Shown piece after piece: positions 8,449-16,314 of a stretch of DNA of 64,000 bases. Both the position numbers and the translations under genes were made by a program. The notes under the pieces are model-generated. The model saw nothing but the letters and a program-made list of their open reading frames with translations, searched no databases and was not told where the DNA came from. The stretch's first letter is position 1. Each line of letters opens with the position of its first letter. Source of the DNA: Zygnema circumcarinatum SAG 698-1b (Eukaryota; Plantae; Zygnematophyceae); assembly GCA_037447605.1 (NCBI GenBank), contig CM074820.1:434001-498000 (forward strand), written 5' to 3'.

Positions 8449-11400
8449 ATGGCCTCCTCCTCTCCCCCCAAGTGGGGCCCGGGCGACATAGCCACTGTGG
8501 CGGTGTACTTTGGAGCGGTGGCGGCCATTGCGGGGTACTCCGCCCGCCGGCTCTCTCGCCGGCGCGGCCCTCAAGAGGGGGAGGGAGAGGGAGAGGGAGA
8601 GGGAGAGAGAGAGGGAGAGAGAGAGGGCGCCGCGGACGCGTACTTCCTCGCGGGGCACTCGGTCCCGGGGTGGGCCGTCGCCGCGTCGCTCTTCTCCGCC
8701 AACATTGGCGCCGAACACTTCGTCGCTCTCGCGGGGAGTGCGGCGGCGAGCGGAATCGTCACGGCATGGTGGGAGGGGGAGGGGGAGGGGAGGGGGGAAG
8801 GGGGAGGGGGGACGGGNNNNNNNNNNGAGAGGAGAGAGAGGGAGAGGAGAGGGAGGAAGGGAGGGAGGGAGTAGGGGCAGGGAGGGAGTGGGGGAAAGGG
8901 AGGGATTGGGGAGTGGAGAAAGGGAGGGGAGGGGAGGGGAGGGGAGGGGAGAGGAGGGGAGGGAGAGGTAAGGAGGGAGAGAGGGAGGGAGAGGGTAGGG
9001 GGAGGGGATGTGAGTGGAGGGAGGGAGTGTTGAGTGGAGGGGAGGGGAGGGGAGTGGTGAGAGAGGAGGGTTAGGCAAAGGTGGGAAAGGGGAAAAAGGG
9101 AGAGGGGAGAATGGGTGAATGGGAGGGACAGGGAGGAAGAGGGAAAGTTGGGAAAGGAGAAGGTGAGGGGAAACCATTGAGGGGGAGAGGGACGGCAGGG
9201 AAGGGGTAGGGAGAGCAGGAAGTAGAGAAGGGGGTGAGGGAAGGGGAATGAAGAAGAGAGCTGCATGAATGGAAAAGCGAGAAACATTTAAAAAAAAAAA
9301 ACTTTTTGACTCGTTAAAGCACTTCTGCTCTTAACTTTATCGCCCGCCAAAAGTAGATCAAGAAATATCGTTTCTCTTTCTCACTAAAGTAATATTTCTT
9401 GGAAAGAAAGTGCTCATTTTTCCTCTTCTCTTGAAATGATAGTAGAATAATACGGAGCTCACGTTCAATTTCATGGGAGAATATAGCGTAAGAGTGAAAG
9501 AATGAGAGACGGGGAGAGAGAGAGAGAGAGATAGAAAGAGAGAGAGAGAGAGAGAGGGAGACGTCCAAAGACATATGGTCCACGCTCTAATCAATGACTA
9601 ATTCACATTTTTTATCCCCTCGTATTCTTTCAGGTATGAATGGGGCGCTATTCCATGTTTATTAATACTTGGATTTTACTTCCTTCCGGTTTATTCAAAG
9701 TCGGCTGTGAGCACGATGCCGGAATTTATCGAAAAAAGGTTTTCGCCTTATTGTCGAACATTTTTGGTTATATTTTCGATACTTATATATATGGTCACAA
9801 AAGTTGCTGCCACTTTATATGCGGGATCAATCATTATTACAGAGGTGAGATTTTTTACTCAATACAGCGTAGGGTTTCATCGGTTGCTTTTCTCTTCTCT
9901 TTCAGCTTTTATTTTGAATCATTTAGTTCTTTTATTGTTTTGAACTTTCGATTGAACTGCGTAAATATCATACCACATAATACGAAGGGGGGAGAGGCCG
10001 TAAGAGAGTGGGGGAGAGAGGGAGCGAGAGGGAGACAGAGGGAGAGGGGCAGAGGCAGCGGGAGAGGGGGTGGGAGAGGCAGAGGCGGAGGCGGCGGGGA
10101 GAAGTGAGCACAAAATTTACTACTTAAAAGAAAAGAACCACAAGAGCCTACTCAAACGAAGACAAAGATAGAAAAAGAGACTTCGCGGGGCTTCCCCCCT
10201 CTAACAGCTCCTCTCCCTCGTCCTTCCCTCCGCTTCCTCTCTCTCTCTTTTCGCCCCTCCCTCCCCTCCCTCCCTCCCTCCCTCCCTCCCAACCCCTGCC
10301 CCTACCCCCGCCCCNNNNNNNNNNCCCTCCCTCCCTCCCTCCCTCAGGTGTCCGACTTCAACAGCCTGCAGGCCATCCTGATCCTCATAGTGGGCACGGC
10401 CGCGTACACGGTGGGGGGGGGCCTTGCGGCGGTCGTGTACACGGAGGCGCTGCAGACGTGCGTGCTCGCAGTGGGGGGGGTCGCCCTGCTCGTGCTCTCT
10501 CTCCTGCGGGTGGGAGGCTGGGGAGAGGTCAAAACCCTCATTTCGGAGGCAGATCCCAACCGTCTCTATTTCCATATCTTTCGGTAAGTGTAGCGGGGAG
10601 AGAGCGAGTGTTCTCTCTCTCTCTCTCTCGCCCCGGCCTCTTTTTCTATTCCCCCAGTTCGTTCGTAATTCTCCTCCTACTTCCTGTCCCGTTTCTCGTT
10701 CTCTCCCTCTTCACTTCCTTCCCTCCCTCTCTTCCTGTCCCTTTCCCCTCTCTCTCTTCTCATGGATGCCCCTATTCCGCTACCCTTCTTTGTGTTTCCC
10801 GTCCTCTCTCCTCTCCTCTCTCTCCTTCTCCCTCCCCTTTTGCTCTCTCCCTCCCCTCTCTCTCCCTCCTCTCTTTCCCTCCCCGCTAATCCCTGGACCA
10901 CATTCATCCCCCCTGCTGCAGGCCCGCCTCCGATCCGGACTTCCCTTGGCCGGGTCTTTTCTTCGGGTTCTATCCGGTCGCGCTTTGGTTCTGGGCGACT
11001 GACCAGGTACATCCCCCCTGGCCCTTTTTCAAGACTTCGAGAAGCTTCTAGAAGCTTGTGGAACTTTCTACTTTGTTTTTTCTTCCATCAGAACCCGTCT
11101 CCATGCGGCTCCCTACTGGAGAGAGGACTTTGTAGAAGGCGGCTTTCCGACAGTCAGTCAAGAAAGTCAAGAAAGTCAAGAAAGTCAATCAAGTCAATGA
11201 AGTCAACACGGTCGATTGGAATCAGCAATGACTTTGTCTTGTTTCCTTTCAGATTCAAATGTTTTAGGGTTTTTTTTTGGGGCCCTTTTGCAGGTTATAG
11301 TGCAGCGTGCTCTTGCTGCAAAAAATATCGAACATGGCCAGGCGGGCTGTGTTGGAGCCTCATATTTAAAGGTATATGCTTTTTTAATTGTATTGTTTTT

Positions 11401-13852
11401 TTCATGGACAAAAACTTCTTCAGAAAACGTCTTTCTTACAAAATCTGAATCCTTCACATGATACATTCTTTGGTATGTTCCTAAGATTTTATTACATTTC
11501 TGCCCTCCAGCTACTTCCGGGGTTCATTATGGTGATCCCCGGAATAATCGGCCGAGCTTTATATATAAAAGAGGGGCTACCCACACCGGCGGGGGATTCC
11601 ACTGCTTACGATAAAGTCTATCCATGGCTCGTTATGAATGGTGAGAGAGACAGAAATAGAGGGATCTCTATATCATTTTTTTCTGAAAAATAATTGTTTT
11701 TACAATCTGTCTATGGCATTGGGGCTTACTTCGAAATTTACTTTGCGTCGCTTTGTTTAATTCTTATTCTTTCTTAGGGTTTTTAGGGTTTCATTTCCTG
11801 GGTATCTTTTTCTTTGTGGCGGACTTAATAATTACCTAATGAGCATACCCTCGTTTTCTGTCTCTCTCTCTTTCACTTCTTTCTCCTCGTTTTGCTCTAT
11901 TTTCCTTCTCTCCTTCGCCTCACCATCCATCCCTTCCCACTCCCTTCCCTCCCATCCTCTTCTCCCCTCCCCATCCTATCTCATATTTTCACTCTCTCCC
12001 TTCCTTCTTTCTTTCAATTCCTCTATCATTGTTCTCCACCTCACCTGTCTTTCTCCCCCGTCCACTCACTCTCTCTCCTTTCTTCCACTCCCCTCCACTC
12101 TCTCCCCCCACCCTCCACGTTAACCTTCCCTCCTTTCCCCTCCTCCCCCTTTTCCTCTACCTGTTTCCTCCCCTTTCCCCTTCATTTCTTTCCCTCACTC
12201 TCCTCCCTTCCTCCCTCCCCACCTACCTCCCTCCCCCTCCCCCTTCTCCCTCTCCCATCCCCTTTCCCCCCTCCCTCCCTCCCCCTCCTTTCTCTCCCTT
12301 CCCCTTTCCCCCTCTCTCCCTCCCTCCCTCCCTCCCTCCCNNNNNNNNNNCCCAGTGATGCCGGTGAACACCCGCGGGCTCGTCCTCGCCGCCATGCTCT
12401 CCGCCCTCATGGGCCATCTCGCGGCGGTCATGAACTCCTGCGCGACCATCGTGGCCGAGAACGTGTTCGCCACATGGCGGCCCGCGAGCTCCCCCGCGCG
12501 GCTGGTCCTGGTCGGTCGCGTCACGGTCCTGGCGGTCGCGGCCCTGAGCGCGGCGTGGCTGCCCGTCATCCCGCGCTTCGGCGCGCAGCTCTTCTACTTC
12601 GTGCAAGAGCCGCCGGCCTTCATGGCGCCGCCGATCCTTGCAATGTTCCTGTGCGGGGTCGCGTTCCGTCACGTCACGGCGGAGGCGGCGGAGTGGACTA
12701 TTTCGATAGGCGTCGGGTTTGGGGCGATAAGGTGGGTTGGAAGGCTCCCCCCCCCCTCTCTTTCTCGCGCTCTCTCTCTCGCGCGCTCTCTCTCTCTCTC
12801 TCTCTCCCCCTCTCGTTCTCTCTTTCGCTCTCTTTGCAGCTCTCTCTCTCTCACTCTCTCTTTCTCTGGTCCTTACCTTTCACTATCTCTCCGTCGACTT
12901 CCCTCTCCCGCCCCCTCACTCATGTCCTTGTCCACGTCCTCTATTGACTCTTTCTGTCTCCCTTCCCTCTCTGAACATCCCTCTCTCCCTTCTCCAAGTC
13001 ACCCATCTCTCCCTTCTCCCCCTTCTTCCTTTCCCCCCCCCGCTTTATCTTACCCCGCCAGGACCCAACCTCCGACCCAAAGCGTCGCTTTTGACATTCA
13101 CTCTACTCCGTTCTGCCTTTCACCGTCCCTTTCTTGTGGGTTTGTTTTCCCTTCACTTGACAGGTTTGCAGCGCAGCTTATTGTGGGGTATGCGGATCGC
13201 TACATCCCCATCATAAGCCCCATTTCATCCATCCAATTCCTTGAATTTGCTTGTGGGAACTTCATCTTCTCCATGTCCCTTTTATTCCTTATCAGCTACT
13301 TCCGCCCACATAACCGCAACTGGGATGTGAGCTCTCAACTCCCCCCNNNNNNNNNNCCCCCCCCCCCCCCCCCCCCCCCCCCCTTCCGCCTCATCTCCCC
13401 TTCCTCTCCTTCAAATTGGATGCTTAGTATGCGATATATGAGTTTGCATGACTACATACATACTGAAAACCCAAATCCCAAGAACTTAAAACTTAAAACC
13501 TAGCAAGTAAAGAAGCCCTACCAATGCATGTGGACATAAGTGCGGCTATGGGCACTATGTTAATTATTTCCTGCCTATAACTATGTTGGCACCTTCTCAG
13601 AAGGAGTCGTCCCGACTGTTATGGAGACAGGGACTTTATTGGGAGCTTCTAGACGAGGCTGAGGCTAACGGCACATCTTCAGAGGCTCCGGCGCCGCCAA
13701 AGTCACATAGTGATGTTGAAGGGAGCCAACATCACTCGTCCCGAACATCACCCTCTTCTGATCATCACCGAGTGCTTCGAAAACGAGCCATCAATATTGC
13801 GGCGGTGGGTTCCCTTGTTTGCTTTGGAGCCGTCGTTTTTACTTTTAGGTAA
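8449..13852 (+). CDS. Sodium:solute symporter family (SSS/SLC5), SGLT/SMIT-like sugar or inositol transporter
   Basis: Exons 8449-8768, 9634-9844, 10348-10583, 10922-11006, 11294-11371, 11511-11640, 12356-12731, 13164-13326, 13601-13852 splice in frame. Motifs YFLAG, SLFSANIGAEHFVALAG, WYEW, TMPEFIEKRF, YTVGGGLAAVVYTEALQ, PWPG..WFWATDQVIVQR and YLKLLPGFIMVIPG parallel SGLT1/vSGLT. Confidence 0.92.
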
Positions 13853-14694
13853 ATTAGAGATTCCACTTAGTGTTCGGGTTCAGGGAAATGTCTTCATTGA
13901 AGGAACCCCACTAAGGGTTTTTCATTGTTTTCTCTTTTTAATCAATTTATAGGATAAAAGGGGAATCTGAGGGCCAAGGTGTTGGTCAATTAGGGGAATG
14001 AAATGTGGGGAAGGAAGAGGAATGTACATACTTTTTGAACCAGAGTCATGCTAAATAGGTGAATAATTGGTCGTAAGTAAAGAGCACAACGCTACGGTGT
14101 TGCGGGCACAACCATGAAGGCACAGTTGTTGCCACAAGCGTTCCATGTACTCCAGTTTATGGGTTTGAGCGTTCCCTGAGCCTAAAACTGTAACTGGATG
14201 GTTTGACGGCACATGTTCACGCTGCGGTTGCGACGGACAGTTCGCAGTGGAGAAAGGCACTCCGATCACACCCCTGTGCAAATACCTTCGTTCTGAATTG
14301 AGGGCACAGCCTTATGATGTAAAGAACACACCATTACATCATTAAGGGCACACCTTTGATAAATCGAGAATGAACCAGCACTTTTCAATGCAATCACAAC
14401 GAATTGATGAACCATAGAAGCTGAAAGGTTAAATCACTTTTCAGTTTAAACATCAGAAGCTGACTACATACAATGAATTAGAGACGTGCTCTTATTGGCT
14501 GAAATCATGGAACGCTGAATTCCTGAAGCTTCAATTCCCCGCTTTAATTTCCCATCACTTAATAGCAACTCCTTCAACTGCACCAGTTATTCCTAAAGAG
14601 AGCTTCACACACAAATCTTACCTCCTCCTGCCGATTCTCCTCTCCTTCCTTCTCTCCCCATCCCCCCCTCTCCCTCTCCCTCTCNNNNNNNNNN

Positions 14695-16010
14695 CCCCCC
14701 CCCCCCCCCCCCCCCCCCCCCTTCCGCCTCATCTCCCTTCCTCTCCTTCAAATTGGATGCTTAGTATGCGATATATGAGTTTGCATGACTACATACATAC
14801 TGAAAACCCAAATCCCAAGAACTTAAAACTTAAAACCTAGCAAGTAAAGAAGCCCTACCAATGCATGTGGACATAAGTGCGGCTATGGGCACTATGTTAA
14901 TTATTTCCTGCCTATAACTATGTTGGCACCTTCTCAGAAGGAGTCGTCCCGACTGTTATGGAGACAGGGACTTTATTGGGAGCTTCTAGACGAGGCTGAG
15001 GCTAACGGCACATCTTCAGAGGCTCCGGCGCCGCCAAAGTCACATAGTGATGTTGAAGGGAGCCAACATCACTCGTCCCGAACATCACCCTCTTCATCAT
15101 CACCGAGTGCTTCGAAAACGAGCCATCAATATTGCGGCGGTGGGTTCCCTTGTTTGCTTTGGAGCCGTCGTTTTTACTTTTAGGTAAATTAGAGATTCCA
15201 CTTAGTGTTCGGGTTCAGGGAAATGTCTTCATTGAAGGAACCCCACTAAGGGTTTTTCATTGTTTTCTCTTTTTAATCAATTTATAGGATAAAAGGGGAA
15301 TCTGAGGGCCAAGGTGTTGGTCAATTAGGGGAATGAAATGTGGGGAAGGAAGAGGAATGTACATACTTTTTGAACCAGAGTCATGCTAAATAGGTGAATA
15401 ATTGGTCGTAAGTAAAGAGCACAACGCTACGGTGTTGCGGGCACAACCATGAAGGCACAGTTGTTGCCACAAGCGTTCCATGTACTCCAGTTTATGGGTT
15501 TGAGCGTTCCCTGAGCCTAAAACTGTAACTGGATGGTTTGACGGCACATGTTCACGCTGCGGTTGCGACGGACAGTTCGCAGTGGAGAAAGGCACTCCGA
15601 TCACACCCCTGTGCAAATACCTTCGTTCTGAATTGAGGGCACAGCCTTATGATGTAAAGAACACACCATTACATCATTAAGGGCACACCTTTGATAAATC
15701 GAGAATGAACCAGCACTTTTCAATGCAATCACAACGAATTGATGAACCATAGAAGCTGAAAGGTTAAATCACTTTTCAGTTTAAACATCAGAAGCTGACT
15801 ACATACAATGAATTAGAGACGTGCTCTTATTGGCTGAAATCATGGAACGCTGAATTCCTGAAGCTTCAATTCCCCGCTTTAATTTCCCATCACTTAATAG
15901 CAACTCCTTCAACTGCACCAGTTATTCCTAAAGAGAGCTTCACACACAAATCTTACCTCCTCCTGCCGATTCTCCTCTCCTTCCTTCTCTCCCCATCCCC
16001 CCCTCTCCCT
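14695..16010 (+). repeat. Near-identical tandem copy (about 1.34 kb) of the symporter's last exon and 3' flank
   Basis: Duplicates about 13337-14684 (offset 1337, then 1335). A 2-nt deletion (tcttc-tg-atcatc to tcttc-atcatc) frameshifts the exon copy. Both copies start at N gaps. Confidence 0.85.
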
Positions 16011-16314
16011 CTCCCTCTCCAGCTTCTCCCACTCCCACTCCCACTCCCACTCCCACTCCCACTCCCTCTCCCTCTCCCTCTCCCTCTNNNNNNNNNNCCT
16101 CTCCCTCTCCCTCTCCCTCTCCCTCTCCCTCTACCTCTCCCTCTCCCTCTCCATCTCCCCTCCCTCCCATGTCCCACTACACATGAATCCACTACAAACT
16201 ATGGCTTTCCTTCTTCCTCCAGTCGCAATCACGAAAGTAAAACAAACCCTTTTATCATCTGATGTTAATATTCACAAATTCGCGCCCACCCTACCCTCTA
16301 TACATTCACGAAGT

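Follow-up and report, generated by a model that had tools for sequence, protein, structure and literature searches.

The window considered here, a 64,000-nucleotide stretch of the genome of the alga Zygnema circumcarinatum SAG 698-1b (GCA_037447605.1, contig CM074820.1, positions 434,001 to 498,000 of the forward strand), carries an SLC5/SGLT-like gene that we traced as nine exons on the plus strand (8449-13852), giving a model of about 616 residues. Its predicted product resembles the sodium/sugar carriers across most of its length and departs from them at the Na2 cation site on transmembrane helix (TM) 8, where a Gly-His pair takes the place of two serines.

The SGLT-like gene and its surroundings

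All exon junctions of the gene follow the GT-AG rule with matching codon phases, and the exons are colinear with residues 5 to 530 of the Mesotaenium protein P0003 (tblastn). Because conservation is poor at that end of the protein, we regard the final two junctions as tentative, exon 9 giving a weak match to P0003 512-530 (tblastn). The exons were treated as separate fragments in all searches and alignments. Membership in the SSS family (TC 2.A.21, PF00474, SLC5) is indicated by significant profile matches of exons 1, 3 and 7 (Pfam SSF, E 8e-10, 2e-12 and 9e-15, respectively) and by the match of exon 7 to TIGR00813 (E 7e-17); exon 2 scores 22.7 bits against PF00474, just below the 22.8 cut-off. 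When all PDB chains were searched with phmmer, exon 7 recovered sodium/sugar carriers only, namely SGLT1, SGLT2, vSGLT and SiaT, and the matches of exons 1-5 were limited to the same four proteins. Exon 1, which ends in the donor TG/GT, aligns to SGLT2 49-96, while exon 2 aligns with SGLT1 101-169 (E 6e-13), exon 3 with SGLT1 176-231, exon 4 with 272-295 and exon 5 with 296-321. Exons 6 and 7 join with a spacing that is presumably the same as in SGLT1. The acceptor of exon 7 lies 5 bases downstream of a run of N, and a search of the window with four relatives (tblastn) found no second, mutually exclusive exon 7 coding for Ser-Ser.

Two further observations concern the structure of the locus. 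Within exon 1, a Gly/Glu repeat (8568-8630, residues ~41-60) derived from a GA-rich microsatellite occupies the loop that links the first helix to TM1; it is absent from the relatives and in frame, and could be either coding or a small unrecognized intron. Downstream, a block that includes the last exon recurs, the two copies being separated by nothing more than a run of N and the last exon being frameshifted in the second copy; this is probably an artefact of scaffolding and not a genuine tandem duplication. GC3 varies in an extreme way from exon to exon within the gene (0.33 to 0.90; Table 1), and C/T-rich simple repeats and N runs border the GC-rich exons.

Table 1. Features of the gene region in the window, with GC content at third codon positions (GC3) by exon
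Feature	Coordinates	Strand	GC3	Content and basis
Exon 1	8449..8768	+	0.80	Start codon, TM0, Gly/Glu repeat loop, TM1 with ANIGAEHF (N78, H83 equivalents)
Exon 2	9634..9844	+	0.33	YEWGA (E102 equivalent), TM2-TM3; AT-rich
Exon 3	10348..10583	+	0.82	TM4-TM5 with YTE (Glu at D204)
Exon 4	10922..11006	+	0.75	FPWPG...LWFWATDQ; Y290 replaced by Phe; W291, D294, Q295 retained
Exon 5	11294..11371	+	0.35	VIVQRALAAKN...YLK (K321 equivalent)
Exon 6	11511..11640	+	0.49	TM7 and loop as far as YPWLVMN; tblastn with P0003 residues 287-343
Exon 7	12356..12731	+	0.90	TM8-TM10: Gly-His motif, F453, Q457; GC-rich
GGC CAT codons	12412..12417	+		Gly, His at Na2-ligand positions S392, S393
Exon 8	13164..13326	+	0.61	TM11-TM12 region; 3' end tentative; weak tblastn/blastp matches to relatives; GT-AG sites
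Exon 9	13601..13852	+	0.45	Cytoplasmic loop, last TM, stop codon; 5' end tentative; open reading frame and splice acceptor
N runs	8817-26, 10315-24, 12341-50, 13347-56, 14685-94, 16088-97			Six, cutting the gene region into ~1 to 2 kb pieces
N run before exon 7	12341..12350			One of the six
Duplicate block	14701..16019	+		99.8% copy of 13363-14684 (1.32 kb, 3 gap positions), including last exon

Cation-site residues in the alga and its relatives

According to a 2023 cryo-EM paper on SGLT2 (PMC10803289), the Na2 site of the SGLTs is formed by the carbonyls of A73, I76 and A389 as well as by the side chains of S392 and S393, the two Na2 serines being S392/S393 in SGLT1/2 and S364/S365 in vSGLT. 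The same source places the Na3 site at D204 (D201 in SGLT2) and the 393-396 stretch, in which T395 sets SGLT1 apart from SGLT2. The peptide encoded by exon 7 at the GGC CAT codons (frame starting 12355/12358) is MLSALMGHLAAVMNS. Residues 1-124 of this exon align to human SGLT1 373-497 (E 9e-22; phmmer, PDB chains) with no gap in TM8, which places Gly at S392, His at S393 and Ala at T395, S396 and S389. The ungapped alignment bears out the initial annotation, which had read Gly-His at the two serines and Ala at the T395 and S396 equivalents, and gives no sign of a misalignment of the pair, which that annotation had itself named as fatal to its reading. The two TM8 hydroxyl side chains that mark the Na2 site of Na+-coupled SGLTs are accordingly replaced by Gly and His, the latter aligned with a direct Na2 ligand (S393). 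An SGLT1-type Na3 site, with an acidic TM5 residue and hydroxyls at 395 and 396, is not seen either, as the algal gene has Glu 204, Ala 395 and Ala 396.

The sugar site tells a different story. The equivalents of N78 and H83 (exon 1), E102 (exon 2), W291 (exon 4), K321 (exon 5) and F453 and Q457 (exon 7) are all retained, in agreement with the initial annotation, which had nevertheless missed the replacement of Y290 by Phe in exon 4, where position 287 is Ala. The set of residues that we take to define the sugar subfamily (N78, H83, E102, Y290, W291, K321 and Q457, with F453 as the gate) derives in part from that annotation and not from a curated definition; by this list the protein is of the sugar/polyol type, having every residue except Y290.

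The closest match to exon 7 is the P0003 protein of Mesotaenium endlicherianum (ME000425S07187; 59% identity); next come further algal and protist proteins as well as that of Chara braunii. All close relatives, from Mesotaenium, Chara, other protists and Acidobacteriota, read LMS[S/A]LASVFNS in TM8, and position 392 is Ser in 41 of the 41 that were aligned. In a wider survey of 152 relatives (the 150 best representatives of a full-library search and two distant proteins, the only ones that a word-index search with exon 7 returned), 102 have Ser-Ser at 392/393 and only three, all from one bacterial family, have Gly-His, the remainder showing ST, SD, GS, SA and a few rarer pairs. A search for loci related to exon 7 returned only relatives of about 33% identity, none with Gly-His, and the degenerate pattern M-G-H-L-A-A-V-M-N-S had no match in metagenome contigs. 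As far as these comparisons reach, the Gly-His change is lineage-specific.

Other departures from SGLT1 belong to the subfamily at large. GAEHF in TM1, YTE in TM5 and Ala 395 are common to the whole subfamily, serine-keeping members included, and judged by the alignment they are background rather than part of the change in the algal gene. Hence, the Glu at D204 that the initial annotation had pointed to is present but a weaker pointer to altered coupling than supposed there, and the same goes for Ala 395, likewise correctly read and also found in SGLT2; both are the norm of the algal, protist and bacterial subfamily and are not linked to Gly-His. Ala 396, in turn, is specific to the algal gene within its clade. 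The Glu of GAEHF was considered as a partner specific to the algal gene and rejected, as it too is the clade norm.

Variation at the Na2 serines also occurs elsewhere in the family. Many protist members, including those of Hondaea and Mucochytrium, have Ser-Ala at 392/393 (P0171, P0179, P0183, P0186, P0187, P0013, P0189 and P0005), suggesting that the second Na2 hydroxyl is dispensable or otherwise replaced in part of the subfamily. In another metagenomic SSS group (L005 3001-3342; L007 385-726), TM8 reads IVASLAGKVNS, where position 392 is Ala and a Lys follows four residues beyond 393. Several streptophyte algae (Mesotaenium P0003, Chara P0008 and Chlorokybus P0172) have SGLT-type SSS genes that are distinct from DUR3, and our literature searches found no paper on SGLT-type genes of these algae.

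The three Gly-His matches of the survey come from a bacterial group named only as Opitutaceae and Armatimonadota metagenome-assembled genomes. A search with one member of this group retrieved 486 clusters at E <= 1e-30, so that the clade comprises at least 486 clusters; the motif was read in 120 of these, and all 120 have ALMGH[LI]SATYNS with an invariant Gly-His. A tree built from the exon 7 region puts the bacterial Gly-His clade on one branch (100/100) that sits among Ser-Ser sequences of bacteria (100/99), and exon 7 of the window inside the eukaryote clade (100/99). Across 34 discriminating columns, the window matches its own eukaryote clade at 26 and the bacterial Gly-His group at four, 392 and 396 among them. 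The tree and the 26-to-4 column count led us to reject transfer or gene conversion from the bacterial clade, and we withdrew Ala 396 as a second convergent residue, since the Ser-Ser sister group of that clade already has it. The Gly-His pair is thus, by these comparisons, the only truly convergent feature shared by the alga and the bacteria. That the same pair was reached independently in both argues that it represents a working arrangement rather than random damage.

No function is on record for the bacterial Gly-His clade. In each of the three genomic contexts read, its SSS gene lies near a gene of the URO-D family (PF01208); the two genes are immediate neighbors in two contexts and one gene apart in the other (L001 8001-9584; L002 7001-8587; L004 7001-8572). 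One context also has B12-binding and DUF1638 genes together with AraC/PocR regulators. The neighborhood resembles a corrinoid methyltransferase locus, which hints at a methylated substrate.

Ion coupling of the predicted carrier

We tentatively favor the reading, to which we would assign a little less than an even chance, that the gene encodes a functional SSS carrier of the sugar/polyol type (SLC5/SGLT-like) that retains neither of the canonical sodium sites, operates independently of Na+ and is most likely an H+/sugar symporter. With Gly and His replacing the TM8 serines whose hydroxyls bind Na+ at Na2, and with positions 395 and 396 of the second site (Na3) devoid of hydroxyls, Na+ would no longer bind at either site. 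As the imidazole starts from the backbone position of a Na+-ligating serine, it is predicted to occupy the Na2 pocket that lies between TM1 and TM8, where the His might act as a built-in titratable charge. The carrier would then work without Na+, most likely by H+ symport of a hexose or polyol, as the published cases of a His at Na2 lead us to infer.

Those cases come from both within and beyond the family. In the H+-driven SSS member DUR3 of Arabidopsis, the imidazole of H222 (TM5) lies at the Na2 position, and the H222L mutant is inactive (PMC11840088). The auxin importer LAX3 has H319 on M8 at the Na2 position, with coupling to the proton gradient proposed, and both H319A and H319R are inactive (PMC12364708). 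ApcT has a Lys on TM5 at the Na2 place (mentioned in PMC11840088). H+-driven SSS members without the Na2 residues exist as well, such as CbrA and MctC (PMC7918813), and substitutions at Na2 reduce uptake (PMC10803289; PMC7918813). The suggestion of the initial annotation that a His stands in for the cation therefore finds partial support in the H+-driven precedents of DUR3 and LAX3 and in the bacterial Gly-His clade, with the coupling ion itself the conjectural part. As for Glu 204, Quick, Loo and Wright (2001) reportedly found that D204E among the hSGLT1 mutants raises the apparent affinity for H+, a point to which we attach little weight, YTE being the clade norm.

The conservation of the gene is consistent with a working protein. 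When the algal exons were added as separate fragments to an alignment of 41 relatives, the algal gene kept 76 of the 83 exon-covered columns with at least 90% conservation; in near relatives, the same test gave losses of 0-9. The seven deviating columns comprise two Leu-to-Ile changes, one Gly-to-Ala, Y290F and the TM8 changes S392G, S396A and F398M, so that three of the seven (392, 396 and 398) are in TM8. Identity to the clade consensus is 0.61 over 366 core columns of exons 2 to 7, as against 0.55-0.72 in 16 relatives. By these measures the protein as a whole looks constrained, with its departures concentrating at the cation site, and the columns kept, the ordinary divergence and the in-phase GT-AG junctions together give the gene no appearance of decay.

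Several points nevertheless weigh against a functional, Na+-independent carrier. The terminal branch of exon 7 in its tree is long (1.14, against a median of 0.11), and the amino-acid changes of this exon, which has a GC3 of 0.90, run to Gly, Ala, Arg and Pro by 15 to 5. Because exon 7 sits in such a GC-rich island, the replacements of Ser by Gly and of Ser by Ala follow the push of composition. The run search found no sequencing run recorded as RNA for the gene stretch. The initial annotation had looked to conservation of the pair in orthologues, and no eukaryotic orthologue with Gly-His was found by the full-library and related-locus searches. Roughly a quarter to a third of the eukaryote clade has Ala at 393, a pattern suggesting that the hydroxyl at 393 may matter less there than that at 392, and other bacterial families combine Gly 392 with Ser 393. 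Finally, the assembly at the gene consists of short contigs joined by N runs.

The branch length, the composition, the missing RNA runs and the lack of an orthologue with the motif would all fit a little-used or decaying copy, in which selection for Na+ binding was relaxed, GC-biased substitution took its course and the protein is inactive or not made. The drift of replacements toward Gly, Ala, Arg and Pro in GC-rich exons is mirrored in AT-rich ones by a drift toward Phe, Tyr, Met, Ile, Asn and Lys. Against decay stand a frame that stays open through all nine exons, the correct splice signals and phases, the retention of conserved columns at an ordinary level of divergence, and the intact sugar site. 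Moreover, neither the Ser-to-His change, whose codon CAT runs against the GC trend, nor Phe-to-Met follows the composition, and random damage would rarely produce the exact Gly-His pair that is invariant in the bacterial clade. We therefore regard decay as unlikely, though deserving of serious consideration.

The state of the assembly raises the separate concern that the motif is an assembly or sequencing artefact, as N runs join the 1- to 2-kb contigs that make up the region, which also holds the 99.8% duplicated block with its indels. We give this very little credence. A sequencing error at the motif is unlikely because four residues within ten codons are off the family consensus, which requires several base changes, with no indel; exon 8, moreover, lies on the same contig in the correct order and frame. 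Four runs from a 2024 study contain 68-71% of the words sampled from the 5.5-kb stretch, a figure that does not test the codons.

If the protein is made and works, the absence of side-chain ligands at both sodium sites is equally what a Na+-independent uniporter or facilitator would present, with the His, neutral or charged, filling and locking the Na2 pocket and no ion being coupled. CaiT has an Arg at the Na2 place, and in some LeuT-fold families, CaiT among them, basic residues there give Na+-independence without H+ symport. The pKa of the Na2-site His in DUR3 is, moreover, estimated to be low, at 4.0 (PMC11840088). On the other hand, the precedents closest in kind, DUR3 from the same family and LAX3 with its His on M8, are both proposed to be H+-coupled, and a facilitator would presumably bring little gain to a freshwater alga faced with dilute external sugars. 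We consider uncoupled transport improbable on balance, to much the same degree as decay.

A carrier that is still coupled to Na+ appears more improbable again. In such a case, the ion would be held by carbonyls of TM1 and TM8, by water, by a nitrogen of the His or by the Glu of GAEHF, which is specific to the clade. Of the five Na2 ligands, three are indeed backbone carbonyls, on which sequence is silent (PMC10803289), and the Ser-Ala and Gly-Ser relatives are annotated as Na+ symporters, although annotations are not tests. However, both hydroxyls are gone in the algal gene, His is in general a poor Na+ ligand, and substitutions at Na2 have been highly deleterious in every SSS carrier tested (PMC7918813).

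Returning to the proposed H+/sugar symporter, we further put forward, as a distinctly more doubtful generalization, that Gly-His acts as a general switch of sugar-type SSS/SGLT carriers from Na+ to H+ coupling and has arisen independently two or more times, being fixed in the bacterial clade and, separately, in one streptophyte alga. Were this correct, no H+-coupled sugar carrier of the SGLT type would have been known from a eukaryote before that of the alga, and the pair would offer a two-residue route for re-engineering the ion coupling of SGLTs. To our knowledge, the change of coupling ion in LeuT-fold carriers is an active question, for which DUR3 is the sole structural example within the SSS family. 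A sugar-type SGLT relative with Gly-His whose near kin keep the Na2 serines amounts to a natural experiment, and it supplies matched pairs for residue swaps, in which the alga can be set beside Mesotaenium or Chara and the bacterial Gly-His clade compared with the Ser-Ser group that is its sister. The gene also bears on how the plant lineage, with its H+-energized membranes, dealt with inherited carriers of the Na+ type; a review of plant sugar transport treats the SGLTs as the animal counterpart of the plant STPs (PMC8298354).

Comparison with known carriers

Set against what is known, the algal gene is a lineage-specific variant of an established family, and the replacement of a coupling ion by a side chain has itself been described before; the new part, as far as the sequences indicate, is the convergent Gly-His pair, which makes the coupling idea directly testable by swap experiments. 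Its nearest relatives are the SGLT-like proteins of algae and protists (Mesotaenium P0003, Chara braunii GBG60497.1 P0008, Chlorokybus Chrsp107S01346 P0172, Chloropicon and labyrinthulomycetes), which are 46-59% identical to it in exon 7, run colinear with it along the entire gene and have the same GAEHF, YTE and Ala 395. The difference lies in TM8, where all of them keep the consensus given above and none has Gly 392 or His 393. Human SGLT1 and SGLT2 (SLC5A1 and SLC5A2) and Vibrio vSGLT have the family and fold in common with it (PF00474, TIGR00813), exons 1-5 and 7 aligning, and SGLT2 also shares Ala at 395. Relative to SGLT1 the algal gene carries S392G, S393H, S396A, Y290F and D204E, and identity in exon 7 is only ~35-40%.

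The bacterial Gly-His clade (e.g., P0283) is likewise of the sugar type within the SSS family, has the same pair at 392/393 and retains the equivalents of N78, H83, E102, Y290, W291, K321 and Q457. It differs in its separate bacterial origin in the tree, in its ~37-44% identity to the algal gene, in having YTD instead of YTE and Ser at 395, and in its length of ~526 residues with no eukaryotic tail.

Among the precedents, Arabidopsis DUR3 is a Na+-independent, H+-driven member of the same SSS family with an imidazole at Na2, but its His comes from TM5 and not TM8, its substrate is urea, its subfamily is distant and its proposed proton carriers are D312 and E402 (PMC11840088). LAX3 has its H319 on M8, the same helix as the algal His (PMC12364708). 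Together with ApcT and CaiT, it is a LeuT-fold carrier with a basic or titratable side chain at Na2; all three, however, belong to other families of the APC superfamily, show no useful sequence similarity to the algal protein and transport other substrates.

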